Shown here: positions 6,823-55,372 of the stretch, one piece after another
Layout of the letters: the number at the start of each line of letters is the position of its first letter
Numbering within the stretch: position 1 is the stretch's first letter
Source of the DNA: Macrostomum lignano
Taxonomy: Eukaryota
NCBI GenBank assembly: GCA_002269645.1
Contig: NIVC01000406.1
Span: 159,494-223,493 of the forward strand
Direction of reading: 5' to 3'
Length of the DNA stretch: 64,000 bases
Notes under the pieces: generated by a model
Databases searched by the model: none
Told to the model about the DNA's origin: nothing
Seen by the model: the letters and a program-made list of their open reading frames with translations, nothing else
Translations under genes and position numbers: made by a program

Positions 6823-6913
6823 GCTGCAGCAGTTTGACTCCGAAAAGCTCACACACAACTCAACAGCTCACTCAAGAGTCAAAGCATTCCCGAAACAGTC
6901 AGGCAACACCACA

Positions 6914-14721: not shown

Positions 14722-14850
14722 AAATCCATGATTTGGTTATAAAACTGTTCTTCAACTTTTTTATTTAAAGCGAGTTGTAAAACCTGACTACTACTAGGTT
14801 GACAGTCTGTCAAATTGGTGTGTTAAACTTGGTAACTTCAGTATAGAAGC

Positions 14851-24400: not shown

Positions 24401-27400
24401 TGCGGAGCGAATGGGGTTTTCCTACTAGACAAGGGTCTCGTTACAAACCCTATCTAACAAACCCGATATGCCCAATCCATTCCACAACAGCGAGTCCACA
24501 TCTTGAAGGCGCTAATTGATTGTCTGCTGTACCGCACCGATCAATTCGTACGCGAACTGGACGAACGCTGCCAGCCAGAAGAGTATCGAGAGATTCGCCT
24601 TGGCAGCGTAGGTCAGTGGGTTTATATCAGATTAGAAGGCCTGGACCTTGAGGCCAGGCACTGGGTCTACAGGCGCTCCGAATATCCTGTGATTGAGTAT
24701 TGTGTTCAACAGTCCGCTTCAAAAAATTCTAAGAAAAAGAAAGCGACCCCCACGCCGGAGAAGGCTGGCGCCGGCGCCGCTTCTGGTCGAAAACGAAAAG
24801 CTGCGTCGCCATCGCCGTGTCAGACGCCGACGCCCAAATCAACTTCATCGACGTCGAGGGGTCGTCGTCGAAGAACCGCCGCCGCGTCGCCACCATCCAC
24901 GCCGACGCCGACTCCTAGGTCGACTTCGACTTCAACTACTAGAAGCGGTCGAGGAGGTCGACGCTCTCGTCTTGCTGGTCGACGTAGAGCTGATGGCGAT
25001 ATCGAAGTCGAAGTCAAAGCCGAAGCTGACGCCCCGACCGACTCGAAGTCGTCAACGCCGCCGCCGCCGGTGCTGAAACGCGAGGAGGAGCATGAGGCGA
25101 TGGATACGACGGAGGCTTCGGAGGTCGACAAATCGGCAGCGACAGCGGCGCCTCAGCTGTCGCTGGCCAACGGCGAGACTAACGGCAAGGAGAAGCAGGG
25201 TGTGGAGGAAGAGAAGGTTGACGACAAAACTGACGAAAATAACGATTCGACGGCTAGCGCTAACGCTGACGCTTCGGCATCCACGTCGGCGTCTACGGCG
25301 CCAGCGGCGGACGAGGAGGCTGCGGCAACCGAGGCTCAAGCTGATGAAGATGACGATGAACGGGATGAAGAGAACGATAAAAAGCTGATTGAGGAGATGT
25401 ATAAAGTTAATATTGAGGTGTGTTGCTTTGTGTCTGTATTTTAGCTGGCTTAGTGTGTCTTAAAAGTCATGCTTACCGTGCTAACATGCCCCATACTCCC
25501 TTCCGTAACGCATTTGCAGCGTCCCAATGCCTCCGAGTTCGAGCTAGTAGCGCAGACTCTGTCCGAATTGCGCGCCCTCATCTCAGGGCTGCGCGCCGAC
25601 CTCGACGCATTGCAGCGCAGCAAAGACGAATTTGACGTGAAAATTAGTAAACGCGGCCGCAAATCGAAGTCAGTGTTGGCGGTAAGCATTAGAAAATTCT
25701 GTTGGATTGAAAATGCCTGAGTGGGATATTGAATAGGGAAATCCCAGAGTGGGATATTGAGAAGGGAAATCCCAGATGCGGGGTATCAATTAGGGAGTCT
25801 CAGAGAGGGTAAGTAGGGAAATCCCAGTGTGGGATATTGAGAAGGGAAATCCCAGATGCGGGGTATCAATTAGGGAGTCTCAGAGAGGGTAAGTAGGGAA
25901 ATCCCAGAGTGGATATTAAGTAGGGAAATCCCAGAGTGGATATTAAGTAGGGAAATCCCAGATTGGATATTAAGTAGGGAAATCCCAGATTGGATATTAA
26001 GTAGGGAAATTCCAGAGTGAGGTATATAAGTAGGGAAATCCCAGAGGGGGTATTAAGTAGGCAAATCCCAGCAAGGGGTATTAAGTAGGGGAATCTTAGA
26101 TGGGGTTTTAAGTAGAGAAATCCCAGAGGGAGTAAATTAAGTAGGTAAATCCCAGAGTGTATTATATAGGGAAATCCCAGAGTGTATTAAATAGGGAAAT
26201 CCCAGGGGGGCATTAAGTAAGGAAATCCCAGAGGAATTAACACGCAAATGCTTTTCCAACTTGCAGGTGGACAGCGATGCGCTGAACAGTCAGATCAGCT
26301 CGCACAGAGAGCTACTAGACGCATTTGTGGCCTTGGAGACTGACTGGGAGGCGGCCGCGCCCAAGATCAGCCATCGCGAGAGGCGAATGCGAGTTCGAGT
26401 AATGCACGAGTTTCGAGAGTTCGAACGGAATTCCGTAAGCTTTGTTAGAGTTTATCTACGTTCGAATTGGTTTCCTTATAGTGTCGGGTTTAATGCTTAA
26501 TAGGAGTGACATTGTTGTCGTTCAAACTGTTTAAGCCCTTAAATGGCACTTAAATGTTGAAAAATGGCACTTATTTGTGAAAAATGACACTTGAATGTAG
26601 AAAATGGTACTTCTATATGAAAGATGGCACTTGAATATGGAAAATGGCACTTGAATTTGAAAAATTACAATTGAATATGAAAAATGGTACTTAAATGGGA
26701 AAAATGGCACATGAATGTGTAAATGACACTTGAATGTGGAAATGGCACTTGAATGTAGAAATGGCACTTAAATGTGGAAAATGTGGAAAAATCACACTTG
26801 AATGTAGAAAATGGCATTTGAATGTGTAAAATGGCACTTGAATTATGGAAAATGGCATTTGAATGTGGAAATGGCATTTGAATGTGTAAAATGGCACTTG
26901 AATATGGAAAATGGCATTTGAATGTGTAAAATGGCACTTGAATATGGAAAATGGCATTTGAATGTGTAAAATGGCACTTGAATATGGAAAATGGCATTTG
27001 AATGTGTAAAATGGCACTTGAATATGGAAAAATGGCATTTGAATGTGTAAAATGGCACTTGAATATGGAAAATGGCATTTGAATGTGTAAAATGGCACTT
27101 GAATGTGGAAATGGCTCTTGAATGTGAAAATGGCACTTGAATGTGGTAATGGCACTTGAATGTGGTAATGGCACTTGAATGTGGAAATGGCACTTGAATG
27201 TGAAAATGGCACTTGAATGTGAAAATGGCACTTGAATGTGGTAATGGCACTTGAATGTGGTAATGGCACTTGAATGTGGTAATGGCACTTGAATGTGGTA
27301 ATGGCACTTGAATGTGGAAATGGCACTTAAATAGGAAAATGGCTCTTGAATGTGGAAATGGCACTTGAATGTGGAAATGGCACTTGAATGTGGAAATGGC

Positions 27401-30001
27401 ACTTGAATGTGGAAATGGCACTTGAATGTGGAAATGGCACTTGAATGTGGAAATGGCACTTGAATGTGGAAATGGCACTTGAATGTGAAAATGGCTCTTG
27501 AATGTAAAAAATGGCATTTAAATATCAAAGTAGCAAAAAATGGCAAAACTGGCACGAATGCAAAAATGACGCCAAGCACGCAAACCCGAACCCCCCAATC
27601 CGCCATCAGGACTATTACCTTCGCGGCGAACTAGCGGAAGAAGCCGCCATGGACAGTCCTACAGCTGACGAAGCAGCCGAGGACGCCGACTACGACGATG
27701 ACAATGACGACGAAATCGACAGCGGCAGCGACGAGCTAGACGAGGATGACAACAACGATGATGATGGAAGCGATCAACAATCAGTTGCTATGGACGATAG
27801 CAATGTTGGAATTTCTACTAGGCGCAGAAAGTATCGAATTCGGCAGGCACCGCCGCCACCTCCACCGCCGCAGCAGCAGCAGCAGCAGAGGCAGCAACAG
27901 TTGCGCAATGTTGGTCCTCGACCGCCACCCCAGCTGCCTCAGCTGCATTCGTTTGGCCAGCAGCAGCAGCAGCAGCACAAGTCTGCAACAATTGTTAGAT
28001 TGGTGAACACTTCCGACAGTGCCGGTAGCGCTGTTGCTAATGTACACATCAAGTACGAGTCTGCCGCTCGGCAGGTGAGTTAATAATTCAATTTGCGATG
28101 TGATCCGAATTTCAACGAAGACGTTGTCTAATTAGAAGTTCTAGAGACTAGATCAACTTAAACTAGAAACACATAATAAATTAGAAGCACATCATAAACT
28201 AAAAACACACTATAAAGTGAAAAACACACTATAAAATACTCGTAGCAACACATTATAAACTAAAAAACACACTATAAACTAAAAACACATTAAAAACTAG
28301 AAACACATCATAAACTAGAAGCACATAATAGACTAGAAGCACATCATAAAATAGAAGCACATAATAAACTAAAAGCACATCATAAAATAGAAGCACATAA
28401 TAAACTAAAAGCACATAATAAACTAAAAGCACATCATAAACTAAAAGCACATCATAAACTATAAACTTAAATTAGAAACACATCAAAAACTAGAAAAATA
28501 AACTAGAAACATCTTAAACCAGAAACACATCATAAACTAGAAACATCATAAAGTAGAAACACATCATAAAGTAGAAACACATCATAAACTAGAAACACAT
28601 CATAAACTAGAAACACATCATAAACTAGAAACACATCATAAACTAGAAACATCATAAAGTAGAAACACATCATAAAGTAGAAACACATCATAAACTAGAA
28701 ACACATCATAAACTAGAAACACATCATAAACTAGAAACACATCATAAACAAGAAACACATCATAAACAAGAAACACATCATAAACAAGAAACACATCATA
28801 AACTAGAAACACATCATAAACTAGAAACACATCATAAACTAGAAACACATCATAAACTAGAAACACATCATAAACTAGAAACACATCATAAACTAGAAAC
28901 ACATCATAAACTAGAAACACATCATAAAATAGAAACACATCATAAACTAGAAACACATTATAAACTAGAAACACATCATAAACAAGAAACACATCATAAA
29001 AAAGACAAATTTTAATCAGTTTTGCTCCCTTCGCTGCAATTTTTCAGGCCACCGCATCTTCGCTGCTGCAACAGCACCTAAACAACAATACTACTAACAA
29101 TAATTCTAGCGTCAATGCAAATAATAGTACTAATAATAGTAGTAATAGCTCCGCATCAGCAGCCAACAGCATCGCTGCTAATTCTGGCACCTTGCCAATA
29201 CTAAGCATCCGATTAACTACTCCTCCAGCGGCTTCGTCATCAGCATCATCAGCGGCATCATCGGCATTAGTTGTTGGCCAAGTAGTGAATGTTGTTGATA
29301 AGCCGGTCAGCAGTACCCAGCAACAGCAGCAGCAGCAGTCTAATAATCCTCCCCCAGCTACCCTGATTCGTTCGAATTTAACTCAAACCGTGGACTGCCT
29401 TCGAGGCCCGATCCCGACTACCCGACTGCAGCAGACTCCAGCTAGTGCTCAGTCGAGCCGTTCTCAGCCTCAGCTATTTGTGCTCAGCAATCCAGGCGGT
29501 CAGCTGGTTGCTGTGCAGCAGTCTCTAGCGCCGCAGGCGCATCAGACGGTGCTGTCATCGGCTGCTAGCAGTAGTCACAGCAGTAGCGTCGGCATAGTGA
29601 AGCCTGCCAATGTTGTACTGCTTGCCGCCTCTGCTGCAACAGCTCCCGCAGCTTCCGGCGGAACCCAGACTGTACTGCGTCTGGCGCAACAGCATCAGCC
29701 GAACTCCACTGTGTTTGCGAGTTCCGCTGCTGCTCAGCCTACTATCTTGCTGCAGTCGCAGGCTACTCCTCAGCAGCAGCAGCAGCAGGCAGTCAGAAGA
29801 AATGTCACCCTCTACAAAGTTGGCGGCATATTGTTCACTCCCGACTGTCGGCCTGTTGTAGTTGAAAATCAAACAATGCGCTACCTGCCTACAGAGAATA
29901 TTGATGCTAAATTGATGAACGCTGCGAAACAGGTCATCACTGAGGCGTTGAAATCTCAACAACAGCAACAACAGCAGGCTACTGTGGTTGGCTATCGTTA
30001 G
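21434..30001 (+). CDS. BRD10: KIAA2026/BRD10-like bromodomain protein, ~1345 aa, 9 exons
   Basis: Exons 21434-21641, 21958-22126, 22706-23258, 23420-23851, 24491-25417, 25520-25681, 26267-26434, 27610-28074, 29048-30001; all phases join. N-terminal bromodomain ELQSAYRIL.DFL...FINPVD...YY.RIKEPMCLLKMKEKF...Y....DF..DFRLML.NC..FN...K.ETLFEQKI.LL.R. The downstream NPLE...FHEL..FQRV.ILKAL.D region is as recalled for KIAA2026. Long low-complexity C-terminus. An extra 5' exon cannot be excluded. Confidence 0.82.
21697..21880. repeat. 18-bp minisatellite in BRD10-like intron 1
   Basis: Unit GACTGTCAGTGACAATTT, ~10 copies. Confidence 0.95.
22150..22410. mobile_element. Diverged copy of the hAT MITE family at 268-540; left TIR lost
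   Basis: Shares AAGGGCCAGA...CTAG.GCATGACTG, the GA-rich core, GGGCCGGAT and the terminal TGCCGACCCCTG (22410). Confidence 0.75.
23895..24335. repeat. 40-bp minisatellite in BRD10-like intron 4
   Basis: Unit GATAGTGCTGGGCGGAGTGGGGTGGCTGTTTTATTTTATT; period seen at 23915/23955. Confidence 0.95.
25720..26240. repeat. ~27-bp degenerate minisatellite in BRD10-like intron 6
   Basis: Core GGGAAATCCCAGAGTGGATATTAAGTA. Confidence 0.9.
26535..27520. repeat. 19-bp minisatellite in BRD10-like intron 7
   Basis: Unit CACTTGAATGTGGAAATGG and variants. Confidence 0.95.
28155..29000. repeat. 18-bp minisatellite in BRD10-like intron 8
   Basis: Unit CATAAACTAGAAACACAT. Confidence 0.95.
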
Positions 30002-31420: not shown

Positions 31421-31481
31421 CATGTGGCTTAACAACTAATTCCCGCTGCGAATCGTTGCACAATAAAGCAAAATAAAAATT

Positions 31482-32961
31482 ATGTCTGACAATCTGACTT
31501 CCGCCGATCGTCCTGAAAACGCTCCCGCCCATTGTCCGGGTGTGAGTAGCGAGTCGGCCGGCAAAGCCGCCCCGTGCGCTGGCTGTCCGAACCAGGGCCT
31601 GTGCAGCAGCGGGGCTGGCCGGGCCGGACCCGACCCCGATCTGGACAGAATTCGCGATCGCCTGGCTGGAGTTCGGCGAAAACTGCTTGTGCTGTCTGGC
31701 AAAGGCGGCGTTGGCAAGTCCACTGTTAGCGTCTGCCTGGCCCGCGCCTTTGCTGCCGCTGCCGCTGATGACGGCCAGGTGGAGACACCGGTGCATCAGC
31801 AGCCTCAGTTGCAGGTGGAGTTGCTTTTTTTCAGAAATTTGTCTGCCCAGCATTCTCGTCCGCCCTTCCTATCCTCGTCTGCCCCTTCCATCCTTATCCG
31901 CCGTTCTATCCTCATCCGCCCCCTTCCTATCTTCATCCGCCCTTTTCCTATCCTCGTCCGCCCCCTTTCTATCCTCATCCGCCCCCTTCCTATCCTCATC
32001 CGCCTATTTCTTATCCTCGTCCGCCCCCTTTCCATCCTCATCCACCCCTTCCTATCCTCATCCGCCCCATTCACAACCTCAACCTCATCCGCTCCCATTC
32101 ACAACCTCAACCTCATCCGCTCCCATTCACACAACCTCAACCCCATCCGCCCCCATTCACAACCTCAACCCCATCCGCCCCATTCACAACCTCAACCTCA
32201 ACCTCATCCGCCCCCATTCACACCTCAACCTCATCCGCCCCCATATACAACCTCAACCTCATCCGCCCCCTAAACCCGCGCATCCGCAGGTGGGCCTCCT
32301 TGACGTGGACATCTGCGGGCCGTCGGTGCCCACCATGCTGGGCCTGCTGGGCGAAACTGTCCACCAGAGCGCCGACGGCTGGTCGCCCGTCTACGCCGAC
32401 GAGTCCCTCGCCGTCATGTCCGTCGCTTTTCTATTGGCCTCGCCAGACGAAGCGGTGGTTTGGCGGGGGCCCCGTAAAAACGGATTAATTAAACAGTTTC
32501 TACGCGATGTAGATTGGGGCCAGCTGGACTACCTGTTGATTGACACGCCACCTGGCACCAGCGATGAGCACCTGTCAATTGTTCAGCTGCTCAAGTCTGC
32601 CGGAGTAGACGGAGCAATTATTGTCACCACGCCGCAGGAGGTGTCCCTTCTAGATGCTCGCAAGGAGGTGAATTTCTGCCGCCGGCTAGGCGTGCCCGTT
32701 CTAGGCGTCGTTGAAAACATGTCCGGTTATGTGTGTCCGAATTGTACACGAAAGTCGGACATTTTTCCGGCCACCACCGGAGGAGCTGCGGCTATGTGCA
32801 AAGAGTTCGGACTGCCGCTATTGGCCAGGGTGCCTATTGAGCCGGGGCTGGCGCGGGCCCTGGATCAGGGTCAATGTCCGATTGACACCATGCCTGACGG
32901 TAGCGAGACCATGACCGCTATGCGGCTCTTGGTTGACCAGCTGAGGACTGCTCTTCCTTGA
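31482..32961 (+). CDS. NUBP1: Cytosolic Fe-S cluster assembly factor NUBP1 (Nbp35), ~322 aa, 2 exons
   Basis: N-terminal Fe-S motif [22 protein letters not shown]; deviant Walker [12 protein letters not shown]; [12 protein letters not shown]; [14 protein letters not shown]; [10 protein letters not shown]; [13 protein letters not shown]; [11 protein letters not shown]. Exons 31482-31778 (alternative donor after 31814) and 32290-32961. Confidence 0.95.
31860..32275. repeat. C-rich degenerate minisatellite in the NUBP1 intron
   Basis: CCTATCCTCATCCGCCCC grading into CACAACCTCAACCTCATCCGCCCC. Confidence 0.85.
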
Positions 32962-33029
32962 TGAGGCCTCACTTGATTTGTATGCTCTGCTGCATTCTGG
33001 CCTGACCACGTTTGCTCTGATATGACTAT

Positions 33030-33680
33030 ATTCATCCGTCTCCATCCGCCCCCTTATCCGTCCCCTCTCCGCCTCCATCCTTCCCTTATCCGCCTCCATC
33101 CGCCCCCCTTATCCGTCCCTTATCCGCCTCCATCTGCCCCCTTATCGGCTTCCATCCGTTCCTTATCCGCCTCCATCCGTCTCCATCCGCCCCCTTATCC
33201 GCCTCCACCCGTCTCCATCCGCCCCCTTATCCGCCTCCATCCGCCTCCATCCTTCCCTTATCCGCCTCTATCCCCCCAATTATCCGCCTCTATCCGCCCC
33301 CCTATCCGTCCCTTATCCGCCTCCATCTGCCTCCATCCGCCCTCTTATCGGCCTCCATCCGTTCCTTATCCGCCTCCATCCGCCCTCTTATCGGCCAACA
33401 TCCGTCTCCATCCGCCCCCTTATCCGCCTCCATCCGTCTCCATCCGCCCCCTTATCCGCCTCCATCCGTCTCCATCTGCCCCCTTATCCGCCTCCATCCG
33501 CCCCCTTATCCGCCTCCATCCGTCTCCATCTGCCCCCTTATCCGCCTCCATCCGCCCCCTTTTCCGCCTCCATCCGCCTCCATCCGCCCCCTTATCGGCC
33601 TTTATCCGCCTCCTTATCTGCTATCCATCCTTCCCTTCTCTACTCTTATCTGCGCTTCTATCCGCTCATTTTTTCATAAG
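33030..33680. repeat. C-rich minisatellite downstream of NUBP1, related to the intronic one
   Basis: CCGCCTCCATCCGCCCCCTTAT units. Confidence 0.85.
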
Positions 33681-34159
33681 CTCCGCCTCTATCAGCCTCT
33701 TGTTGCACGGAATGTAACTCGCCCTTCTCCCTCGCTACAGCAGACTTCTGGTCTGTGTTTTATTTGTACTCATGATTTCTCAATACCAATTATGATGCTT
33801 AATCTTCTTAACTACGTTTAAGTGCCATGTCTTCATGTGTCATCGAACTGATAAAGTTAGTGGTTAATCATATGCGTCATCTGCAATACAATAATATTAC
33901 TCCAATTATTCGGCCAATATTCATTAAGATCTGCAATTAATGCTCTGAATTTGTACAAAAACTGTTGATTGTACTTTCTAAATTCTAATGCTCTGAAGAA
34001 TGTTTGTAGTAGAGCGGTTATCTTCGGGCTTGATTGATTTATAATGAATAATATCTTTTGGTTTTTGAATTTCTTTGCCAGGCTTCGTCTTTTCTTTGTT
34101 ATAGTCATTTTGCTGCCGCATTAGGTTTACTGCAATATATTCGACACTAACCTATTCTT

Positions 34160-35705
34160 CTCTAATCCACTCTACTCTCTCCCTCCCTATTCTACACTCT
34201 GCTCTCTCTAGTCTACACTCTGCTCTCTAGTCTACACTCTACTCTCTCCATTCTATACTATACTCTCCCTATTCTACGCTCTGCTCTCTCTAGTCTACGC
34301 TTGCTCTCTCCAGTCTACACTCTGCTCTCCCTATTCTACACTCTGCTCTCCCTATTCTACACTCTGCTCTCTCTAGTCTAAACTCTGCTCTCTAGTCTAC
34401 ACTCTACTCTCTCCATTCTATACTATACTCTCCCTATTCTACGCTCTGCTCTCTCTAGTCTACGCTTGCTCTCTCCAGTCTACACTCTGCTCTCCCTATT
34501 CTACACTCTGCTCTCCCTATTCTACACTCTGCTCTCCCTATTCTACACTCTGCTCTCTCTAGTCTACACTCTACTCTCTCCATTCTACACTCTGCTCTCC
34601 CTATTCTACACTCTGCTCTCTCTAGTCTACACTCTACTCTCCCTATTCTACACTCTGCTCTCCCTGTTCTACACTCTGCTCTCCCTATTCTACACTCTGC
34701 TCTCCCTATTCTGCACTCTGCTCTCTCTAGTCTACACTCTACTCTCCCTAGTCTACACTCTGCTCTCCCTATTCTGCACTCTGCTCTCTCTAGTCTACAC
34801 TCTACTCTCCCTATTCTACACTCTGCTCTCCCTGTTCTACACTCTGCTCTCCCTATTCTACACTCTGCTCTCTCTAGTCTACACTCTACTCTCTCCATTC
34901 TACACCCTCCTCTCCCTATTCTACACTCTGCTCTCCCTGTTCTACACTCTGCTCTCTCTAGTCTACACTCTGCTCTCTAGTCTACTCTCTACTCTCTCCA
35001 TTCTACACTATGCTCTCCCTATTCTACACTGCTCTCCCTGTTCTACACTCTGCTCTCCCTATTCTACACTCTGCTCTCCCTATTCTACACTCTGCTCTCC
35101 CTATTCTACACTCTGCTCTCCCTATTCTACACTCTGCTCTCTCTAGTCTACACTCTGCTCTCCCTATTCTACACTCTGCTCTCCCTATTCTACACTCTGC
35201 TCTCTCTAGTCTACACTCTGCTCTCCCTATTCTACACTCTGCTCTCCCTATTCTACACTCTGCTCTCTCTAGTCTACACTCTGCTCTCCCTATTCTACAC
35301 TCTGCTCTCTCTAGTCTACACTCTGCTCTCCCTATTCTACACTCTGCTCTCCCTATTCTACACTCTGCTCTCCCTATTCTACACTCTGCTCTCTCTATTC
35401 TACACTCTGCTCTCCCTATTCTACACTCTGCTCTCCCTATTCTACACTCTGCTCTCCCTATTCTACACTCTGCTCTCCCTATTCTACACTCTGCTCTCTC
35501 TAGTCTACACTCTGCTCTCCCTATTCTACACTCTGCTCTCTCTAGTCTACACTCTGCTCTCCCTATTCTACACTCTGCTCTCCCTATTCTACACTCTGCT
35601 CTCCCTATTCTACACTCTGCTCTCTCTATTCTACACTCTGCTCTCCCTATTCTACACTCTGCTCTCCCTATTCTACACTCTGCTCTCTCTAGTCTACACT
35701 CTGCT
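34160..35705. repeat. 21-bp minisatellite, ~1.5 kb, upstream of SFMBT
   Basis: Units CTATTCTACACTCTGCTCTCC / CTAGTCTACACTCTGCTCTCT. Confidence 0.95.
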
Positions 35706-35912
35706 GTCTTTCTCCTCTACTCTCTACTCTCATCTACTCTAACTCTTTCGACTCCTCTCAGCTCTCTACTTACATTCTGCTCTTTTAAGTCTACTATCTC
35801 TCTCCAACTGTTCACCCAACTTCATAACCTGTTACTGAACTTCTTGCAAACTCACGACTCCTGCTCTAATTCTTTTTCCTCTTTAACTGCATCGACCCTC
35901 CGCCCTCTGCAG

Positions 35913-38900
35913 ACCGCAGAGCCGGCAACCGCCAAACCGGTTGAGACGCCCCTAGCGGCGTCAACGGGACCAGAGGATGACTCGAACCCCTGCCGCTCGT
36001 TCACCTGGGATGATTACCTGCAGAATACGGGCGCCATCGCGGCCGATTCCGACACTTTCCATCACGTAGAAGCTGCCCACGCCAGCCTCTGCCGGCCTGG
36101 CATGCTGTTCGCGTTGCCATGGAAACGCGACACTTATTGGCCAGTTCGCATAGCAACTGTTAGCGGACCGTTGCTAGGCGTTCAATTCGTTGGCGCAGCT
36201 TCGTCGGTTGCTAAGGAGCAGCATCAGCATCAGCAGCCAGTGTGGTACAGCGTGGCCAGCAAGACTGGCAAATCGCTGGATTGGTGCCGCCAGAACCCCA
36301 CGCTAGTAAAACCGCCGCCCGAAGTTCGAGTCGGCGACTCTTCAGACACTGCAGACGATGCCGTATTGAAAAGTTTATTACTAGGCAAAGGCGAAGGCGA
36401 AGGCGAGGACGCTCCGACTGAGATGCTTGATGGTGACGCCCTGCAACCGGCTGAGAGGATTCTGGAGGGCGGCCTGTTGGAGTGCTGCGACTGTCTGATG
36501 CCATACGCTCTGTGGTTTGTTAAGGTTAGCTGGGATGCAGATGGAATGCAGATTGGTTCCAGTATCGGGTAGATTGGTTCCAGTTTCGGCTTTCGGGTAG
36601 ATTGGTTCCAGTTTCTGGTAGATTGTTTCTAGTATCGGGTAGATTGGTTCCAGTATCGTGTAGATTGTTTCCAGTATCGGGTAGATTGGTTCCAGTATCA
36701 GGTAGATTGGTTCCAGTATCGTGTAGATTGTTTCCAGTATCGGGTAGATTGTTTCCAATATCGGTTAGATTGGTTCCAGTATCGTGTAGATTGGTTCCAG
36801 TATCGTGTAGATTGTTTCCAGTATCGGTTAGATTGGTTCCAGTGTCTGGTAGATTGGTTCCAGTTACTGGTAGATTGGTTCCAGTATCAGGTAGATTGGT
36901 TCCAGTTTCGGGTAGATTGGTTCCAGTTTCGGCTTTCGGGTAGATTGGTTCCAGTTTCTGGTAGATTGGTTCCAGTATCGGGTAGATTGGTTCCAGTTTC
37001 GGCTTTCGGGTAGATTGGTTCCAGTTTCTGGTAGATTGTTTCCAGTTTCTGGTAGATTGGTTCCAGTATCAGGTAGATTGGTTCCAGTTTCTGGTAGATT
37101 GTTTCAAGTATCGGGTAGATTGGTTCGAGTATCGGGTAGATTGGTTCCAGTATCAGGTAGATTGTTTCCAGTATCGGTTGGATTGGTTCCAGTTTCTGGT
37201 AGATTGTTTCAAGTATCGGGTAGATTGGTTCGAGTATCGGGTAGGTTGGTTCCAGTTTCGGCTTTCGGGTAGATTGGTTCCAGTTTCGGCTTTCGGGTAG
37301 GTTGGTTCCAGTATCGGGTAGATTGGTTCCAGTTTCGGCTTTCGGGTAGATCGGTTCCTTAATCTAATAGCGCAGTTCCAGTTTCCTCAGTGCGAGCACC
37401 TCGAACGCCATCATCCCGCCACCCAAAGGTCGTTAGCAACCGCGGCGGCCGACTCCAGCTCGTGTGGATGGACGAGCAGTGCTCGGAGCCCCGGCCCGAC
37501 AGAGAGCCGTTCTACCTGTTCTTCACCAGCCACCGACTGCATCCGTTGGGGTTTGGCGCCTCGGATAGCGAGCAGAAGTCGTCACTTCCCTACTATTATT
37601 CTCCCAGCCTGACCGAGTCGGGCCGGGTGTCCAACGAGTCGGCCACCAGCCTATCGTCGTCATGGCAACCAGCATTAGCCGGTAAATTTATGCGCAAGCA
37701 TCGGGCCCCGCCGCAGCATAGATTCCGCTTGGGCCATCGAATGGAAGCTGTGCATCCGGTGCATAGGCGGACTATCCAGCCCGCCTCTGTCGTGTCAGTG
37801 ATTGACAAGCACTTTTTCATTGTCGAATTGGACGATTTACGGCCGCCTAGTGAACGGCAGAGCGTGAAACGGTTGTGCACTGCGGAGACCTGCGAGATAT
37901 TCGCCGCTAATACTTGCGCCTCGAGGTCGCTGCCCTTGACTCCTCCGCCGGGTGAGTTTACCAGTGTCGGTTGTGGGATATTTATCAATGTGTCAGCTGT
38001 AGAATGTTATCTGTGTCGGTTATGAGGTGTTTGTTAGTGTTTGTTGTAGGGTGTTTATTGGTGTCGTTTGTGAAATGTTTATCGGAGTCAGTTGCGGGGT
38101 GTTTATCAGCTAGTCAGTGATGGGAATGTCGATCTGCTAGTTAGTGGTTGGGTTGTTTATCAGCTTGTCAGTCGTACAGCGGGGTGTTTATCAGCTAGTC
38201 AGTTGTGGGGGTGTTTATCAGCTAGTCAGTTGTGGGGGTGTTTATCAGCTAGTCAGTTGTGGGGGGTGTTTATCAGCTAGTCAGTTGTGGGGGTGTTTAT
38301 CAGCTAGTCAGTTGTGGGGGTGTTTATCAGCTAGTCAGTTGTGGGGGTGTTTATCAGCTAGTCAGTTGTGGGGGTGTTTATCAGCTAGTCAGTTGGGGGG
38401 TGTTTATCAGCTAGTCAGTTGTGGGGGTGTTTATCAGCTAGTCAGTTGTGGGGGTGTTTATCAGCTAGTCAGTTGTGGGGGTGTTTATCAGCTAGTCAGT
38501 TGTGGGGGTGTTTATCAGCTAGTCAGTTGTGGGGGTGTTTATCAGCTAGTCAGTTGTGGGGGTGTTTATCAGCTAGTCAGTTGTGGGGGTGTTTATCAGC
38601 TAGTCAGTTGTGGGGTGTTTATCAGCTAGTCAGTTGTGGGGGTGTTTATCAGCTAGTCAGTTGTGGGGTGTTTATCAGCTAGTTTATCAGTGTAGACTAG
38701 ACTAGCATAACTACAAAACGGCCCATCACAAACCACTGTACTCCCATTAACCGCAATTCCCAGGTCACAGCGGCCACTTCACCTGGGCTGGTTACCTGGC
38801 CAGCCTCCCAGCCTCATCGGACGGTCAAGCCGCCCAGGCCCCGCCCGACTCATATTTCCAGCTGCCAGACGAAGAGTTCGACTTTTGTCTGGGCGAAAAG

Positions 38901-40634
38901 TTGGAAATGGTCAGCCAAGAGGAACCAGCTAATACTCTGGTGCCGGCCACCATCACCAGGTTTATTGGCCGGCTGATGCTGCTGCATCTCAATCATCTGC
39001 CGCCGCTGTCTCCGCCAATTCTGGTTGACATGGGATCCACCAGCCTGTTCCACGTTGGCTGGGCCGAACTGAATGGCCATCGAATGTCTGTGCCGTTTTG
39101 CTATCAACAGGTATATTAATGAATACTTACTCAAATTAATTGCTTTATGTTTTCACTTTAGTCACAAGGTTCACTCTGACCCACTAATTAACCTACTCAT
39201 TGATCCACTAATTGACCTACTTTTTGGCCTACTTTTTGACCTACTTATTGACCTACTTATTGACCCACTTGTTGACCTACTTTTTGACCTACTTATTGAC
39301 CCACTTGTTGACCTACTCAGTAAAGCCTGCTAATAGGCGTACTATAACTAATTTAATAATTTTACCTCTAGTTTAGAGTACCTTATTTTTATAACTACTA
39401 TTCGATGTATTGACGCATATGCAATATATTTTACCCTTCAGTGAACATGCTTTACTTATTATTCTAATACACACGCTTCTCGCCTACTAACAGTAGCAAT
39501 CTGTAGAAAAAATGTTATAGTTAAGCCTTTTAAAAAGTCTCAACTACCCTGCCACCATTGCAGGCGGCCCATCACAAGCGCCTGCTAACTAACGTGCATC
39601 CGCCAAGCTGGTGCAGCAAAATCTACGTCAACAGCCGTTGCCACGTGGGCCCCAGCCTGTCCAAAGGCTCCGTAGATGGCCTACCAAAGTCCCTCGGTCC
39701 AGGCGACGTGTGCGTCCTACTCGAAGACCTAATCAGTCGAATAGTACAAGCGGCCTACAATCCCACGAAGGTGTTAAAAGACATCGAGCGTGATCCCGAA
39801 GAGCCGCGCGATTCTCTGGCTCAACGCCCGATGAAAGCGAAGTTCAAAGGCAAATCTTATTCGTCAATAGTGCAGCTGTGCAATAACAGCATGTTTCTAG
39901 ACGAATATTTGAAGCAGTTCTGCATCAGACTGAAGGCCTGCCCCTATTTTGTTAGCGTATTCCGTTTGCGCACCTCCTGCCCGGAGACCTGTCAGGCCAG
40001 ATTAAAGAAACTGCTCACAGTCGAACGGTTGCCAAGGAAGACTCGACCGCCTAGGCTGCTCAGACCGAATGCTTCGGCTAGCAATCTGCCTCAGCTGGAG
40101 CAGCAACCGCAGCATCAGGCAGGCGGAGACGACAGCTATCAAGGTGGCGCCGATGTTGACGACGATCTGGCTAGCAACCATTCCTCAGCTAATGGCGGCG
40201 CCGCTCGGGTGCAAACTCGCGGCGTCCGTCTGCCCAGCTACGCCCTGCTAGAGAAGCGCAAAAAGCGGCGCAATAATAATCATAACGATGATCAGCAGCA
40301 GCAGCAGCAGCAGCAGGCTTCTGCCTCGGCTGGAGCGGCCGCATCTGCTACTACTAGTAGTAGTAAGAAAGCTAAATTAGCTCCTCCATTGATATCTAAT
40401 CCGTTGCATTGGTCAATTGACGAATTGTTAATCTATTTAAAATCCAATACGGACATATCTGACGATGTCTGCGAGCTGCTCGTGTCTGAGAAGGTCGATG
40501 GACAGGCCTTCCTGTTGCTGACTCTGCCCACTGTTGTTAGCGGGCTGGGCTTGTCTCTGTCAGCCTCTGCCGAGCTCTGCCACTGCGTCTGGCAGCTTAA
40601 GAAGGCCTTCTTTCAGCAGTTCGCCAATAGCTAG
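35913..40634 (+). CDS. SFMBT: Scm-like with four MBT domains (SFMBT1/2-like): 4 MBT + SLED + SAM, ~850 aa, 4 exons; start codon not present in the first visible exon
   Basis: Exons 35913-36524, 37429-37951, 38764-39110, 39564-40634; phases join. MBT motifs FTWDDYL..TGA.AA...[30 protein letters not shown]...[14 protein letters not shown]: IYVNSRC.VGP.L.K.....LP.SLGPG...VL...I...AYNP..VL. SAM: NPL.WS.DE......[15 protein letters not shown]...CH....LK.AFF.QFAN. Confidence 0.9.
36548..37355. repeat. 21-bp minisatellite in SFMBT intron 1
   Basis: Unit GGTAGATTGGTTCCAGTATCG. Confidence 0.95.
38085..38690. repeat. 27-bp minisatellite in SFMBT intron 2
   Basis: Unit GTTTATCAGCTAGTCAGTTGTGGGGGT. Confidence 0.95.
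39175..39320. repeat. 12-bp minisatellite in SFMBT intron 3
   Basis: TTGACCTACTTA / TTGACCCACTTG variants. Confidence 0.85.
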
Positions 40635-42150: not shown

Positions 42151-42894
42151 TTCTGTTTTGCGGTAGTTAAAATCGTTTTGCTATTTAAATTTAGTTCATT
42201 TCATTAAGTATTTGTGTACAAACACGAAACACGGAACTTGTTAATATTCATTTCATTTGTCTAATAAATTCTGCTCTGACCTTAACAGGAGAATTACTGT
42301 TTTTTTCTTCTCTTCCAGAAGTGTTTGTGATTTAGATAAATTATCTATAATAAGCTCTCTATTGCTGCTCCAATTCTAAGAGACGCGTTGCCATTCTTTC
42401 TGTCCAAAAGTATCTTTTAATTGTTGTGCTAAGCTCACAAAAAATATTTATTAAATAAGGAGTTTATGTCGAAACAATATTTATTGCGTCTGCGTAAAGT
42501 ACAAATCTGTGTAGTGCTGTGACTGAAATTCCAATGTCATATTTTATTTGAAATTACCATAAACTCCTTTCCTTATCTGATGGCCAAGCAATTTTCGCTT
42601 AGTGCGATAGTGTTTAATAATAATCTTTCTTAAATTAATAAATTACAGTTCTATCTTAATTTTAGTAATAAAAAAACTAACTTTCTATTTCCAGGCACCA
42701 CGTCAGTATGCATCGTTTTTTATTACTTGTATCAACGATAATAATTCATTGTGGTTTATGATTTATAATATAATCTATTATTTAAGTTACGAGTGCGCAC
42801 CGTGTGACCGTGTGCGCGTTTATTGACTCGATAAGTTAGTTTATAACAGTTTATAAATGCAGTTAATCTCGTGTCATTTCGCTTTTAATCCTGT

Positions 42895-43570
42895 AAAAGT
42901 CATGACCTTGACTCGTGAAGGAATCGGGAATCCCGTACAAACCATGACCTTGACTCGTAAAGGAATCGGGAATCCCGTACAAATCATGACCTTGACTCGT
43001 AAAGGAATCGGGAATCCCGTACAAACCATGACCTTGACTCGTAAAGGAATCGGGAATCCCGTACAAATCATGACCTTGACTCGTAAAGGAATCGGGAATC
43101 CCGTACAAATCATGACCTTGACTCGTAAAGGAATCGGGAATCCCGTACAAATCATGACCTTGACTCGTGAAGGAATCGGGAATCTCGTACAAATCATGAC
43201 CTTGACTCGTGAAGGAATCGGGAATCCCGTACAAACCATGACCTTGACTCGTAAAGGAATCGGGAATCCCGTACAAATCATGACCTTGACTCGTGAAGGA
43301 ATCGGGAATCTCGTACAAATCATGACCTTGACTCGTGAAGGAATCGGGAATCCCGTACAAACCATGACCTTGACTCGTAAAGGAATCGGGAATCCCGTAC
43401 AAATCATGACCTTGACTCGTGAAGGAATCGGGAATCTCGTACAAATCATGACCTTGACTCGTGAAGGAATCGGGAATCTCGTACAAATCATGACCTTGAC
43501 TCGGGAAGGATTTGGAAATCCCGTGCAAATCATGACCTTGAATCTTGGGTGATCGAATCGGGAATCCCAT
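42895..43570. repeat. 42-bp minisatellite, ~16 copies, with an incipient 3-unit higher-order pattern
   Basis: Unit ATGACCTTGACTCGTAAAGGAATCGGGAATCCCGTACAAATC. Confidence 0.95.
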
Positions 43571-44394
43571 ATAAATCATCAATAATTGATTAGGTTATTT
43601 TTTTAACCAATCTACTTAAGAATGAGCTTTGTATTTGTTTAGAAAATATCGATTGAAAACGGCTACAATGTGACTTGAGACCTGATTTGTACCATATCTC
43701 TCCTAGTTAAAAGGGCAATTTTTTAAGAAACGCAAACTAAATTGGAAGTATGTGTGTACTGTACGTTTTGTGTTCTGTATATTCTCAGAAAGAGGCAGAA
43801 AAGTCACGTGTGTTAGGCCAAAACGTGTTACCCTGAAGGCACCGGGTGCACTGATCCGAGAGGGATTGAGTTTCTTTGCAACTCGCTTCGTTCGTTTCCT
43901 TGGGGGGGGGGGGTGGCTGCAGAAAAAGAGGGAGAAGAGAGACGTGCCAGATAGAAAATTGGACGAAAAATTGTTATAACCTCTGAGACGCGTTCTCAGT
44001 TCTCTGCACCTCTCCGTACTATACTAACTCTTCAATTCTATAATGCTCAATGAAACAGCTGCTGTTGCTGCTGCTGCTGCTGAGATATCTGAAAGTCCAA
44101 CAGCCAATGGGAGCAGATTAGAGGGACAGAAAGAGAGACCTGTTCGTTGTTTTCTGTCCTCTTCAAATATCCCATATCTCTATATTATATAGTGTAGTCA
44201 TATAGCTAGACCTGCTCAAGATCCTAAACACAGCTGACAGGTTGCTAAGCTGAATTTAAGACGGCTGTTGAAGAGCAAAGCTGGTTAAAGAAATAATAAT
44301 GCAGTTTAGCACTGCGGCTGATTTGAAATTCTGCTCTGCAACTAGCAGGTGAGTGTGGCGTGATTACTTTAAGGCCATGTTTTCATACTCGAAG

Positions 44395-45420
44395 GGTGAG
44401 ATTTTGAGAGCCTCTCATAACACTGATTATGAGATGTTGAGACCCTCTCCTAACACTGATTATGAGATGTTGAAACCCTCTCCTAACACTGATTATGAGA
44501 TGTTGAGACCCTCTCCTAACACTGATTATGAGATTTTGAGACCCTCTCCTAACACTGATTATGAGATTTTGAGACCCTCTCCTAACACTGATTATGAGAT
44601 GTTGAGACCCTCTCCTAACACTGATTATGAGATTTTGAGACCCTCTCCTAACACTGATTATGAGATTTTGAGACCCTCTCCTAACACTGATTATGAGATT
44701 TTGAGACCCTCTCCTAACACTGATTATGAGATTTTGAGACCCTCTCCTAACACTGATTATGAGATTTCGGGACCCTCGGCTAAAACTGATTATGAGATTT
44801 TGAAACTCTCGCCTGAAACTGATTGAGATTTTGAAACTCTCGCCTGAAACTGATTGAGATTTTGAAATTCTCGCCTGAAACTGATTATGAGATTTTGAAA
44901 CTCTCGCCTAAAACAGATTATGAATGAGATTTTGAAACTCTCGCCTAAAACAGATTATGAATGAGATTTTGAAACTCTCGCCTAAAACAGATTATGAATG
45001 AGATTTTGAAACTCTCGCCTGAAACTGATTGAGATTTTGAAATTCTCGCCTGAAACTGATTATGAGATTTTGAAACACTCGCCTGAAACTGATTATGAGA
45101 TTTTGAAACTCTCGCCTAAAACAGATTATGAGATCTTGAAACTCTCGCCTGAAACTGATTATGAGATTTTGAAACACTCACCTGAAACTGATTATGAGAT
45201 TTTGAAACTCTCGCCTGAAATAGATTATGAGATTTTGAAACTCTCGCCTAAAACAGATTATGAATGAGATTTTGAAACTCTCGCCTGAAACTGATTATGA
45301 GATTTTGAAACTCTCGCCTGAAACTGATTATGAGATTTTGAAACTCTCGCCTGAAACTGATTATGAGATTTTGAAACACTCACCTGAAACTGATTATGAG
45401 ATTTTGAAACTCTTGCTTAA
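44395..45420. repeat. 33-bp minisatellite with two variant domains
   Basis: CCTCTCCTAACACTGATTATGAGATTTTGAGAC up to ~44760, then CTCTCGCCTGAAACTGATTATGAGATTTTGAAA. Confidence 0.95.
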
Positions 45421-45809
45421 AACTTACTGAAATTTTTTCAGGGGCGCCAAAACCTATAGATTATGAATAATTATCATCCTTGCTTGGCTAGGCATATTAA
45501 TCAGTCCTTCTAGCCAGTTAGTTAAATAATATAATTATAATTGAGGCTGCAAAATGCAGAGAACACTGGGCTTGATGTGGATTTTGGTATTGCATGCGCT
45601 TGGCGATGGATTTTTGAGATTAGATAAGGCAGTGGGACACGAAGACAGATTAAGCTCGTTTCTTCCAAAGTGCCGCAAGAAAAATGAAATAATAAAAGCT
45701 CTTATTTATGTGGTTTTTTTTATTATTCGGTCGTAATACTCGTTTAAGCTACTCTTTCATTAGTAGACAAAGCGGGCATAAGTGAGATTTTTTTAATACC
45801 AAAAAACAC

Positions 45810-50559: not shown

Positions 50560-51780
50560 TTGAATGGTCCACTTAATGCTATTGGCGCCACAATTTGATT
50601 GTGTTTGGCGCCACAAAATGAGTTTAATTGGCTCCAAATAAGTTGATAGGCGGCACAATGAGTTTTATTAGCGCCATAGTATGATTTTAATTGGCGCCAA
50701 AATATGACTTTTATTGGCGCCACAATATGAACATCATTGGCGCTGAGTTTATTTGGCGCCAAAATATGAGTTTCTTTGGTGCCACAATACGAGTTTAATT
50801 GGCTCCACAATATTGAGTTTAATTGGCTCCACAATATGACTGTCTTTAGCGCCACAATTTTGAGTTTAATTGGCTCCACAATATGACTGTCTTTAGCGCC
50901 AAAATTTTGAGTTTAATTGGCTCCACAATATGACTGTCTTTAGCGCCACAATATTAAGTTTAATTGGCTCCACAATATGACTGTCTTTAGCGCCACAATT
51001 TTGAGTTTAATTGGCTCCACAATATGACTGTCTTTAGCGCCACAATATTAAGTTTAATTGGCTCCACAATATGACTGTCTTTAGCGCCACAATTTTGAGT
51101 TTAATTGGCTCCACAATATGACTGTCTTTAGCGCCACAATTTTGAGTTTAATTGGCTCCACAATATGACTGTTTTTAGCGCCACAATATTGAGTTTAATT
51201 GGCTCCACAATACCAGTTTAATTCGCGCCACAATATTGAGTTTAATTGGCTCCACAATATGACTGTCTTTAGCGCCACAATATTGAGTTTAATTGGCTCC
51301 ACAATATGACTGTCTTTAGCGCCACAATTTTGAGTTTAATTGGCTCCACAATATGACTGTTTTTAGCGCCACAATATTGAGTTTAATTGGCTCTACAATA
51401 CGAGTTTAATTCGCGCCACAATATTGAGTTTAATTGGCTCCACAATACGACTGTCTTTAGCGCCACAATTTTGAGTTTAATTGGCTCCACAATATGACTG
51501 TCTTTAGCGCCACAAAATTGAGTTTAATCGGCTCCACAATATGACTGTCTTTAGCGCCACAAAATTGAGTTTAATTGGCGCCACAATATGACTGTCTTTA
51601 GCGCCACAATATTGAGTTTAATTGGCTCCACAATATGACTGTGTTTAGCGCCACAATATTGAGTTTAATTGGCGCCACATATGACTGTCTTTAGCGCCAC
51701 AAAATTGAGTTTAATTGGCTCCACAATATGACTGTCTTTAGCGCCACAATATTGAGTTTAATTGGCGCCACAATACGAGT
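50560..51780. repeat. 47-bp dimeric minisatellite (23+24-bp subunits) upstream of pyruvate carboxylase
   Basis: Unit AATTGGCTCCACAATATGACTGTCTTTAGCGCCACAATTTTGAGTTT; period seen at 50821/50868. Confidence 0.95.
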
Positions 51781-52096
51781 GTCATCCAAATGTCATCAGC
51801 GCGGAAAGCATAGCACCAGAAGCGTCAAATGAATCGCTTATTTACTCTAAACAGTTATGAATTGTTAACCTTAGCACTGAAAGCTTGCATATACGATCGA
51901 CTTATGACATAGACGAAATGAAAAATGCACTCTAGACGTTGGGACCAGTAAGCGCCATCGACTATACATTTGTCTATGCTGGACAAAGTTCTTAGAGAAC
52001 GCGCCTACAAGTAGCTCAGATCTACAAGTAGCCGTTCTTTAATAATTGAATAAATTAGAAATCAGTCAACTGATTGACAAAACACGAGATCACAGC

Positions 52097-55000
52097 ATGG
52101 CATCGGGCACGCTGCCTCCGGCGAGAAAATTCGAAAAAGTTCTGGTGGCCAATCGAGGTGAGATTGCCATGCGGATTTACCGAGCTCTGTCTGAAATGGA
52201 GATCAAGTCTGTTGGCGTGTACAGCGAGGCCGACACCATGCACATGCACCGCACTATGGCGGATGAGTCCTATCTGATTGGCAAAGGTCTGCAACCGGTG
52301 CAGGCGTACTTGAGCATTTCTCACATCATTCAGGTTGCCAAGGAGACTAAGGCAGATGCTGTGCATCCTGGTTATGGCTTTCTGTCCGAGAGTGCCGAGT
52401 TTGCTCAGGTTAGTGAACCTACTATGTACATCGAATGTACATTCACCCCCTACGCTACCGCATATACATCAACTCAACACCAGATGCATGCTTTATATTA
52501 TACGGTGTTCATGCACCCAAATTTACAAAAACGAACACTGTATGTAGACCCAATGTATTACATCCAACCAACCATTAACGTACACTCGATGCAGATCTAA
52601 CTAACAAAAGATGTACACTCTATGTACACCCAATCAACCAACACAATGTACACCAAATGTACACCCAATCAACCAACACAATGTACACCAAATGTACACC
52701 CAATCAACCAACACAATGTACACCAAATGTACACCCAATCAACCAACACAATGTACACCAAATGTACGCCTAATCAACCAACACAATGTACACCAAATGT
52801 ACACCCAATCAACCAACACAATGTACACTCTATGTACACCCAATCAACCAACACAATGTACACCATATGTACGCCTAATCAACCAACACAATGTACACCA
52901 AATGTACACCCAATCAACCAACACAATGTACACCAAATGTACACCCAATCAACCAACACAATGTACACTAAATGTACACCCAATCAACCAACACAATGTA
53001 CACCCACCAAATGTACACCCAATCAACCAACACAATGTACACCCACCAAATGTACACCCAATCAACCAACACAATGTACACCCACCAAATGTACACCCAA
53101 TCAACCAACACAATGTACACTAAATGTACACCCAATAAACCAACACAATGTACACCAAATGTACACCCAATCAACCAACACAATGTACACTAAATGTACA
53201 CCCAATCAACCAACACAATGTACACTAAATGTACACCCAATCCAAGGCCTGTCACGCTGCCGGCATCGCATTCATCGGTCCCCGGCCGGAGACGGTCCGC
53301 CTGCTCGGCGACAAGGTGTTCGCCAGGGAGGCCGCCGTCAGCGCCGGCGTCCCGGTGGTGCCCGGCTCGCCAGGAGCTATCGCCGACGCAGCCGCGGCCG
53401 AAGAGTTCTGCCGGGTCCACGGCCTGCCGGTCATCTTGAAGGCGGCAGCCGGCGGTGGCGGACGCGGCATGCGGGTGGTTCGACGCCTGGAGGATGTCGC
53501 CGAAGCCTTCGAACGGGCTTCGTCGGAGGCAACGGCTGCCTTTGGCAACGGGTCAATGTTTGTGGAGCGGTTCGTTGAGTCGGCCAGGCATATTGAGGTT
53601 GGGCATTGCTCGTGTCCTGAGGAAATCTGGTACCTGTTATTTCTTAGATCTCCGCTTCGAATCCCAATCTCAAGAATTCATCTCAGGAATCCCCATCTCA
53701 AGAATCCCCATCTCGAGAATCCCCATCTTGAAAATCCCCATCTCAAGAAGTCCCCATCTCAAGAATCCCCATATCAATAACCCCAACCTTAAGAATCCCC
53801 AACTCACGAAATCCCCATCTCAAGAAGTCCCCATCTCAATAACCCCCATCTTGAGAATCCCAAACTCAAGAAATCCCATCTCAAGAAATCCCATCTCAAA
53901 AAATCCCATCTCAAGAATCCTTATCTCGAGATCCCCAATCTTAAAAATCCCACCTCAAGAATCCCCGAACCGCGCCCAGGTACAAATCCTAGCGGACAAG
54001 GCCGGCTCGGTGATTCACCTGTTCGAACGCGACTGCTCAGTGCAGCGGCGCCACCAGAAGGTGCTGGAACTGGCACCTGCTCACAAGCTGCGCCAAGAGG
54101 CTCGCGAAGCAATTCTGTCTGACGCGGTGAAGCTGGCAAAAAGTGTGGGCTATGAGAATGCAGGCACGGTGGAATTTCTCTTCGAAGAGTCCACCGGGAG
54201 GCACTACTTTATGGAGGTAAACCCTCGGGTGCAGGTTGAGCACACGGTTACTGAGGAGATTACCGGTGTCGATATTGTTCGAACTCAGGTGAGGCTTGCC
54301 AACTTGATGCTCTTTGTGAGGGGTGCCATTTCATTTTGAGGGGTGCCACTTCATTGTGAGGACTGCCATTTCATTGTGAGGACTGCCATTTCATTGTGAG
54401 TGGTGCCATTTCATTGTGAGGGGTGCCATTTCATTGTGAGTGGTGCCATTTCATTGTGAGTGGTGCCATTTCATTGTGAGGGGTGCCATTTCATTGTGAG
54501 GGGTGCCATTTCATTGTGAGGACTGCCATTTCATTGTGAGTGGTGCCATTTCATTGTGAGTGGTGCCATTTCATTGTGAGGACTGCCATTTCATTGTGAG
54601 GGGTGCCATTTCATTGTGAGGGGTGCCATTTCATTGTGAGGGGTGCCATTTCATTGTGAGGACTGCCATTTCATTGTGAGGGGTGCCACTTCTTAGTGAG
54701 GGGTGCCATTTTATTGTGAGGGGTGCCACTTCTTAGTGAGGCGTGCCATTTCATTGTGAGGGGTGCCACTTCTTAGTGAGGGGTGCCATTTCATTGTGAG
54801 GGGTGCCACTTCTTAGTGAGGGGTGCCATTTCATTGTGAGGGGTGCCACTTCTTAGTGAGGGGTGCCGTTTCATTGTGAGTTGCTGCCCGATCCCCAGAT
54901 CCGCATAGCGGAGGGCCACAGCCTGTCCAGCCTCGGCCTCAACCAATCGGAGATCGCTGCCAGCGGCTGCGCCATGCAGTGCCGGGTGACCACGGAGGAT

Positions 55001-55155
55001 CCTGAGCGGGACTTTCAGCCGGACTCGGGCCGACTCGAGTACTTCCGGCCCGGACTGGGGCCCGGCATCCGGCTGGACTCGGCCAGCGCCTTCGCAGGCG
55101 CCATCATCTCGCCTTATTATGATAGCCTGCTGTGCAAGGTGAGGCTGCAGACTGG

Positions 55156-55213
<58 letters not shown>

Positions 55214-55288
55214 CTAAGACAGACAGACAGACAGACACTAAGACAGACAGACAGACAGACACTAAGACAGACAGACAGACAGACACTA

Positions 55289-55372
<84 letters not shown>

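Follow-up and report, generated by a model that had tools for sequence, protein, structure and literature searches.

The 64,000-nucleotide stretch of DNA analysed here (the window, whose own coordinates are used throughout) comes from the free-living flatworm Macrostomum lignano, contig NIVC01000406.1 of assembly GCA_002269645.1 (Mlig_3_7). It carries on its forward strand a gene of the SFMBT family, preceded by a NUBP1 gene. The question raised by this locus is how translation of SFMBT starts, since the gene has no AUG of its own able to give the complete conserved protein, and the start codon is probably supplied by the spliced leader (SL). Positions 25913–50634 of the window (copy L001 of the locus) correspond to NIVC01000406.1:185406–210127, with identical sequence. 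The SFMBT model built from the sequence has four exons (Table 1), with 35913 as its first base and GT..AG at all internal junctions. It codes for 850 residues, or 851 with a methionine from the leader, which agrees with the ~851 residues predicted in an earlier reading of this DNA made from the letters alone (hereafter the sequence-only reading). The model matches GenBank PAA83740.1 ("hypothetical protein BOX15_Mlig025360g3, partial") at every residue, and the coding sequence of this entry opens at 35913, directly 3' of cTGCAG. Identity was 100% to both PAA83740.1 and PAA67991.1 of M. lignano, and both carry the label "partial". There are two more genomic copies, Mlig021614g4 (850 residues, L002) and Mlig010103g2 (844 residues, L003), and these are also "partial".

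By its domain content the gene is an SFMBT (Scm-like with four MBT domains) gene of the Polycomb type, with a function in M. lignano that is predicted on this basis. Pfam MBT matched four stretches (E = 1.1e-35), giving four tandem repeats; the match to MBT1 was weak, and the MBT core begins at residue 69. A SLED domain (PF12140, residues 511–625, E = 2e-23) lies C-terminal to the repeats. No Pfam SAM model matched the C-terminus, even at E <= 10; its final 80 residues share 45% identity (E = 7e-20) with the SAM end at the C-terminus of echidna SFMBT1, a protein listed with PF00536. The top PDB matches were the four-MBT modules of Drosophila Sfmbt, L3MBTL2 and MBTD1, and a fish SFMBT1 aligned to the model at 26% identity across 97%. 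A homology search with exon 1 alone (204 residues) gave no match, and the full-length query was required. Four MBT repeats, a SLED domain and, to judge by this similarity, a SAM-like C-terminus liken the protein to vertebrate SFMBT1 and SFMBT2 and to Drosophila Sfmbt, a PhoRC subunit. The short N-terminal leader of the M. lignano protein resembles that of vertebrate and insect "Scm-like with four MBT" proteins, whereas its sequence is divergent and the long N-terminal region of Drosophila Sfmbt is missing.

Inspection of the gene's 5' end revealed that the first in-frame genomic ATG is codon 64, and that none of the cis-encoded AUGs would yield the conserved protein in full. The sequence-only reading had placed this ATG (36102) inside MBT1 and had argued that a start there would delete a conserved segment. 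Both statements held. The ATG aligns with the GM of GMKLE, a conserved motif at the start of the MBT1 barrel, and the 35 residues on its 5' side (FTWDDYL...FHHVE) are the MBT1 arm. In the alignment, the arm (F.W..YL...F.HVE) is kept in planarian, insect, spider, mollusc, annelid and vertebrate SFMBTs, and its residues align with structured regions of MBT proteins whose structures are solved. Full-length orthologues begin 2–45 residues ahead of the arm, and 29 residues are predicted here.

Exon 1 begins in phase 0 at 35913, equivalent to NIVC01000406.1:195406, after an AG at 35911–35912 with a tract rich in pyrimidines (15 of 20 positions) before it, as had been read from the sequence. The CTGCAG that ends this tract is the only site within ~300 nt fitting the trans-splice acceptor motif [T/C]TNCAG, which is found at 9551 of the 21754 trans-splice sites of M. 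lignano (PMC8629364). The argument also relied on a leader ending in AUG, and this proved to be the case: M. lignano has a single 35-nt SL, CGGTCTCTTACTGCGAAGACTCAATTTATTGCATG, which ends in ATG and is followed directly by GTAAG in the SL RNA gene (PMC8629364). The terminal AUG is the only one in the leader. Trans-splicing concerns 30% of M. lignano genes (PMC8629364), and ATG terminates every flatworm leader reported (PMC12582326). Neither the leader sequence nor an SL RNA gene was matched in the window or in the three loci, even when only the last 12 nt were considered. Joined at 35913, the SL-ATG/ACC GCA GAG runs in frame into MBT1 with no stop between. Joined at the second AG (35919), 7 nt downstream, the SL-ATG is out of frame and meets a stop after 12 codons; this product would read leader, then AGCCGGCAACC.

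Upstream of the acceptor, the sequence-only reading had described 1.5 kb of satellite with no evident coding exon, and had named cis-splicing from an upstream exon with an ATG as a finding that would speak against its proposal. The satellite is there (34171–35705), and the RNA-guided annotation contains no cis-spliced upstream exon with an ATG in any of the three copies. A further statement, that the SFMBT frame begins directly after the acceptor, was right for the exon, which starts there in phase 0, but not for the frame, which is open for 954 nt upstream. It is open because the satellite unit is 21 nt long, a multiple of 3, and stop-free in that frame. Copy L002 has 726 open nt upstream, with no in-frame ATG, and in copy L003 a 10-nt insertion brings a stop into frame 54 nt upstream of the acceptor. 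The whole region between NUBP1 and the acceptor, the outron, consists of a satellite (33034–33630), a unique AT-rich part (~33660–34170), the 21-nt satellite and ~200 nt of unique CT-rich sequence.

The way in which the GenBank entries were made gives information on the 5' end of the transcript. The M. lignano gene set is derived from the TBONE pipeline, which maps SL-trimmed reads and cuts transcriptional units at peaks of SL reads, open reading frames being called by TransDecoder (PMC5730564). In two of the three copies (L001 and L002), the 5'-partial coding sequence starts exactly at the first base after the AG. It does so even though the frame is open upstream in both, and TransDecoder would have lengthened the open reading frame had the transcript extended further; the 5' end of the transcript therefore probably lies at the acceptor. 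From this construction of the annotation, we infer that SL reads map at 35913.

Taken with the gene model, these data suggest the following course of events. With no usable 5' donor ahead of 35911–35912, the spliceosome would join the 35-nt leader to 35913, and the satellite-filled outron would be discarded. The predicted junction is leader end TTATTGCATG joined to ACCGCAGAGCC, within a trans-spliced sequence of TTTATTGCATG followed by ACCGCAGAGCCGGCAACC, so that the mature mRNA would read cap-...UUAUUGC-AUG/ACC GCA GAG CCG.... On this message, ribosomes would meet the terminal AUG of the leader before any other AUG, with the MBT1 exon in the same frame, and an 851-residue protein with four MBT repeats, the SLED domain and a SAM-like end would be made. 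Without trans-splicing at exactly the AG at 35911–35912, there would be no full-length SFMBT. That a trans-spliced leader AUG serves as initiator of SFMBT, the central proposal of the sequence-only reading, is supported by the AUG-ending SL, the annotated start of the coding sequence and the lack of any other usable AUG, and we estimate its probability at roughly 0.78. What points to use of the leader AUG is that no other usable AUG is present; being in frame is, taken alone, a 1-in-3 event.

Table 1. Features of the NUBP1-SFMBT region (window coordinates).
Feature	Position	Strand	Remarks
NUBP1/Nbp35-type cytosolic Fe-S assembly ATPase	exons 31482–31814, 32290–32961	+	334 aa, own ATG; BOX15_Mlig025360g2
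Intercistronic region/outron of SFMBT	32962–35912	+	2951 nt; 819 nt after subtraction of repeats
21-nt satellite	34171–35705	+	unit TCTACACTCTGCTCTCCCTAT, 73.6 copies (Tandem Repeats Finder, TRF)
In-frame ATG within satellite	35010–35012	+	only in this copy; single-unit variant, judged chance
Pyrimidine tract and 3' splice acceptor	35893–35912	+	cgaccctccgccctctgcAG; CTGCAG at 35907–35912 fits [T/C]TNCAG
Second AG, 7 nt downstream	35918–35919	+	accgcAG/AGCC; used by chimeric UniProt model A0A1I8F8R1
SFMBT coding exon 1	35913–36524	+	204 codons, phase 0 at both ends; 28-aa leader, MBT1, start of MBT2
Two out-of-frame ATGs	35977–36012	+	ATGs at 35977 and 36010, both in the +1 frame; precede Met64
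First in-frame genomic ATG	36102–36104	+	codon 64; conserved Met of GM(K)LE, MBT1 core
SFMBT exon 2	37429–37951	+	remainder of MBT2, and MBT3; spliced product identical to P0004
SFMBT exon 3	38764–39110	+	MBT4
SFMBT exon 4	39564–40634	+	SLED domain, Q-rich linker, C-terminal SAM-like domain, stop TAG

From the parallel with Schistosoma mansoni, we infer that ribosomes initiate at the leader AUG. As far as the work of Cheng et al. (2006) is reported in later papers, ~28% of the trans-spliced mRNAs of S. mansoni have the leader AUG in frame (PMC9851317), and in more than 40 S. mansoni cDNAs correct initiation depends on it (PMC9851317, PMC12582326). The SFMBT case shares with these SL-AUG mRNAs a flatworm leader ending in AUG, in frame, with an acceptor directly 5' of the conserved open reading frame and no other AUG ahead of the conserved domain. 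It differs in that M. lignano belongs to the free-living Macrostomorpha, with another leader, and in that another gene is concerned; use of the AUG is deduced here, whereas by the same second-hand accounts it was tested by transfection there. That flatworms can initiate translation at an SL AUG has been known since 2006, and SFMBT would be an instance of this, not a new principle. A leader-supplied start codon in frame with the main open reading frame is also what defines the likeness of SFMBT to slORFs (slORFfinder, PMC9851317). The slORFs of nematodes, Oikopleura and trypanosomes mostly use non-AUG NUG codons, and many are alternative, whereas the leader AUG of SFMBT appears to be the sole route to the full protein.

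Several observations weigh against initiation at the leader AUG, or against the joining of the leader at 35913. The context of the leader AUG is UUGC AUG A, with a pyrimidine at -3; in vertebrates, a pyrimidine at this position permits leaky scanning. The annotated 5' ends are not uniformly at the acceptor, as in L003 (Mlig010103g2) the coding sequence is annotated 18 nt downstream (AKPVETP...), with no AG before it. The corresponding segment (L003:9983–10001, equivalent to about 35913–35930 of the window) has an acceptor and first codons identical to those of the other copies, and the offset may be a leader-trimming artefact or a misassignment of reads among near-identical copies. Support for SL joining at 35913 comes from an annotation that takes trans-splicing into account and from the logic of the sequence. 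In parasitic flatworms, common acceptors are often used for both cis- and trans-splicing (PMC12582326). Finally, the outron holds 16 formal ATG..GT mini-exons in phase 0, among which the most plausible, 33835–33855 (MCHRTDK), has a passable donor, AAA/GTTAGT. A cis-spliced upstream exon providing the start codon, either such a mini-exon in the AT-rich part (~33700–34170) or a NUBP1-SFMBT fusion, is nevertheless unlikely. The mini-exon 33835–33855 is not included in the RNA-guided annotation, and both other copies have a weaker donor, gttatt, at this place. The one model that adds coding sequence from upstream, UniProt A0A1I8F8R1 (P0011), represents such a fusion: in it, a NUBP1 donor (32899/32900, ACG/gtagcg) is joined in frame to the second AG (35919/35920), but this is an ab initio model on an older assembly, with no Met, a frame-shifted NUBP1 stretch and both ends truncated. 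No such intron is found in the RNA-guided annotation of the three copies; NUBP1 has its own stop, and its 334-residue product is annotated separately. There may be a rare cis isoform of SFMBT. The outron contains no GTRAG donor, a count to be read against the 0.32 sites expected from composition, and this absence was dropped as support for trans-splicing. Two of the three donors of SFMBT itself misfit GTRAG, so that the lack of this motif in the outron says little.

Trans-splicing at 35913 might also take place with ribosomes passing the leader AUG, which lies 32 nt from the cap and has a weak -3 base by the general context rule, and starting at Met64 to give a product of 787 residues without the MBT1 arm; an older UniProt model (P0006) does begin at Met64. 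We consider this very unlikely. The ATGs at 35977 and 36010 lie between the two positions and open a dead-end frame of 30 codons, Met64 is itself conserved and lies inside the MBT core, and the arm that would be lost is conserved from planarians to vertebrates, all full-length orthologues beginning ahead of it. The frame left open by the satellite offers one more start, the in-frame ATG at 35010, from which it runs unbroken to 36524 in this copy; on a transcript that is not trans-spliced, it would add ~300 satellite-encoded residues. This can practically be discounted. A repeat unit that lacks stops and has a length divisible by 3 accounts for the open frame, the resulting extension would consist of nothing but low-complexity repeat (LPILHSALP repeats), and the annotated coding sequence does not include the region from 35010. 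The ATG itself is absent from L002, and the stop in L003 interrupts the frame; being absent from both paralogous copies, this ATG is a chance occurrence and not a start codon. The copies are ~98–100% identical across the outron and exon 1, so that selective constraint on the acceptor cannot be shown from paralogues. Their comparison was used only to dismiss the ATG at 35010 and to weaken one mini-exon donor.

Older protein models of this gene are heterogeneous. A0A1I8F8R1 (369 residues, "PWWP domain-containing protein"), a chimera of NUBP1 and SFMBT exon 1, is evidently faulty and was read as a gene-finding program's way around the absent ATG. Further old models take QTAEP, one codon inside the outron, or Met64 as their start. 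Together, the old SFMBT models look like mis-annotations of a gene without its own ATG.

Leader-supplied initiation of SFMBT may be of limited evolutionary scope. An exhaustive protein search detected no other macrostomid SFMBT orthologue, and the nearest matches outside Macrostomum were ~33% identical. Triclad orthologues start with MSSIWYEYL in three records: the Dugesia japonica protein, a UniParc sequence with 73% identity to it, and an RNA-seq contig from Logan. This contig (SRR21676451, L004:1–94) opens with the Nextera mosaic end AGATGTGTATAAGAGACAG, followed by ~75 nt of unique 5' sequence and then by ATG AGT TCA ATA TGG (MSSIW). The stretch immediately 5' of the ATG is TTTAGACGGCTGAATTATATG, which may bear a vague resemblance to planarian leaders. 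An assembler could not carry a unique 5' stretch of at least 75 nt through a shared leader, so that the triclad AUG appears to be cis-encoded. We tentatively conclude from these sequences that triclad SFMBT has a cis-encoded AUG, and that leader dependence would be a feature of the Macrostomum lineage, not of flatworms as a whole; its conservation across flatworms is not supported. It could be imagined that Macrostomum SFMBT lost its own AUG, making its translation strictly dependent on trans-splicing, and that the tandem acceptors 35912/35919 act as an on/off switch, for instance between neoblasts (85% of whose specific genes are trans-spliced) and differentiated cells, a scenario that we regard as distinctly improbable.

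The position of SFMBT relative to NUBP1 was also inspected. For NUBP1, only one GT..AG solution gives the 334-residue protein, which matches PAA83739.1 exactly, and Pfam ParA/CbiA was found on the locus. In all three copies, NUBP1 and SFMBT are numbered consecutively within one transcriptional unit (g2/g3, g3/g4 and g1/g2), and the locus tags place SFMBT second or later in each unit. Such consecutive tags imply that a continuous precursor RNA joins the two genes. In M. lignano, operons are recognised by a repeat-adjusted distance below 1 kb (PMC8629364). The spacing between the NUBP1 stop (32961) and the acceptor (35912), once the TRF arrays (597 + 1535 nt) are subtracted, falls within this limit. 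The two genes are on the same strand, and together with the presumed trans-spliced status of SFMBT this is the arrangement expected of an M. lignano operon. SFMBT thus looks like the downstream gene of an operon with NUBP1. It shares with the published operons of this species (PMC8629364, PMC5730564) the common unit, the [T/C]TNCAG acceptor and the repeat-inflated spacer, and, like the SL trans-spliced genes described in the same papers, it is a conserved gene with a human homologue. No AATAAA or ATTAAA was found between the NUBP1 stop and the SFMBT acceptor (32962–35912), and the 3' end or poly(A) site of NUBP1 is not evident. The NUBP1 copy Mlig010103g1 (P0010; L003:6212–7666) is annotated as 5' partial, with 8 extra residues (NRCTIKKI) ahead of the Met of the other copies. 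In the window, the NUBP1 frame is closed by a TAA that lies 18 nt upstream of its ATG (31464–31466; open reading frame listed from 31467), which indicates that the extension is copy-specific 5' untranslated sequence read as coding. Just 5' of NUBP1, a glutamine-rich, bromodomain/KIAA2026-like gene of 1354 residues (+ strand) has its start upstream of 25913 and its end at 30001, and may be gene 1 of the transcriptional unit that NUBP1 belongs to.

The 5'-partial status and the coordinates of the gene are already public. In the papers that could be searched, no link of SFMBT, or of any named M. lignano gene, to leader-AUG initiation was found, and the gene identifiers of the locus gave no match in the supplements of the M. 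lignano papers searched. The leader ATG as a start codon is not treated in PMC8629364 or PMC5730564, and a term search of PMC8629364 found no mention of it. For annotation, the proposed initiation would mean that the GenBank SFMBT entries are "5' partial" only as a result of leader trimming, the true N-terminus beginning with the leader Met, and the same missing-ATG error probably affects other trans-spliced M. lignano genes. Transgenes, antibodies and knock-ins for SFMBT need the true start, and the acceptor and its phase must be kept. The gene would also provide, in a stem-cell-model flatworm capable of transgenesis, a testable case of whether the conserved leader AUG is functionally used.

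Introns and spacers across the window are filled by unrelated minisatellites with units of 15–47 nt, each array spanning 0.3–1.5 kb. Examples are found at 26541–27516, 28159–29000, 34171–35705, 36550–37338, 38086–38683, 42887–43579, 44397–45424, 50752–51783 and 52611–53242. Several of the units are multiples of 3, and long spurious open frames result. The SFMBT introns at 36525–37428 and 37952–38763 are mostly satellite, and satellite-filled introns are also found in a pyruvate carboxylase-like gene (52046–61900, + strand), recognised by eye from an N-terminal biotin carboxylase motif and a C-terminal biotinyl-type motif. A gene of the universal stress protein family (Pfam Usp) is listed at 14836–17000 and a Laminin_G_3/ConA-like open reading frame at 9469–10419, both on the + strand. 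Near the start of the window, an inverted duplication (2348–3216 and 6614–7500; arms of ~870 nt total, with 97–99% complementarity) surrounds ~3.4 kb. Within it lies, on the minus strand, a degenerate reverse-transcriptase fragment (4597–5427; RVT_1 E = 0.005, below the Pfam cut-off). This arrangement probably represents a retroelement in decay that was caught up in a palindromic rearrangement, or else an artefact of assembly.

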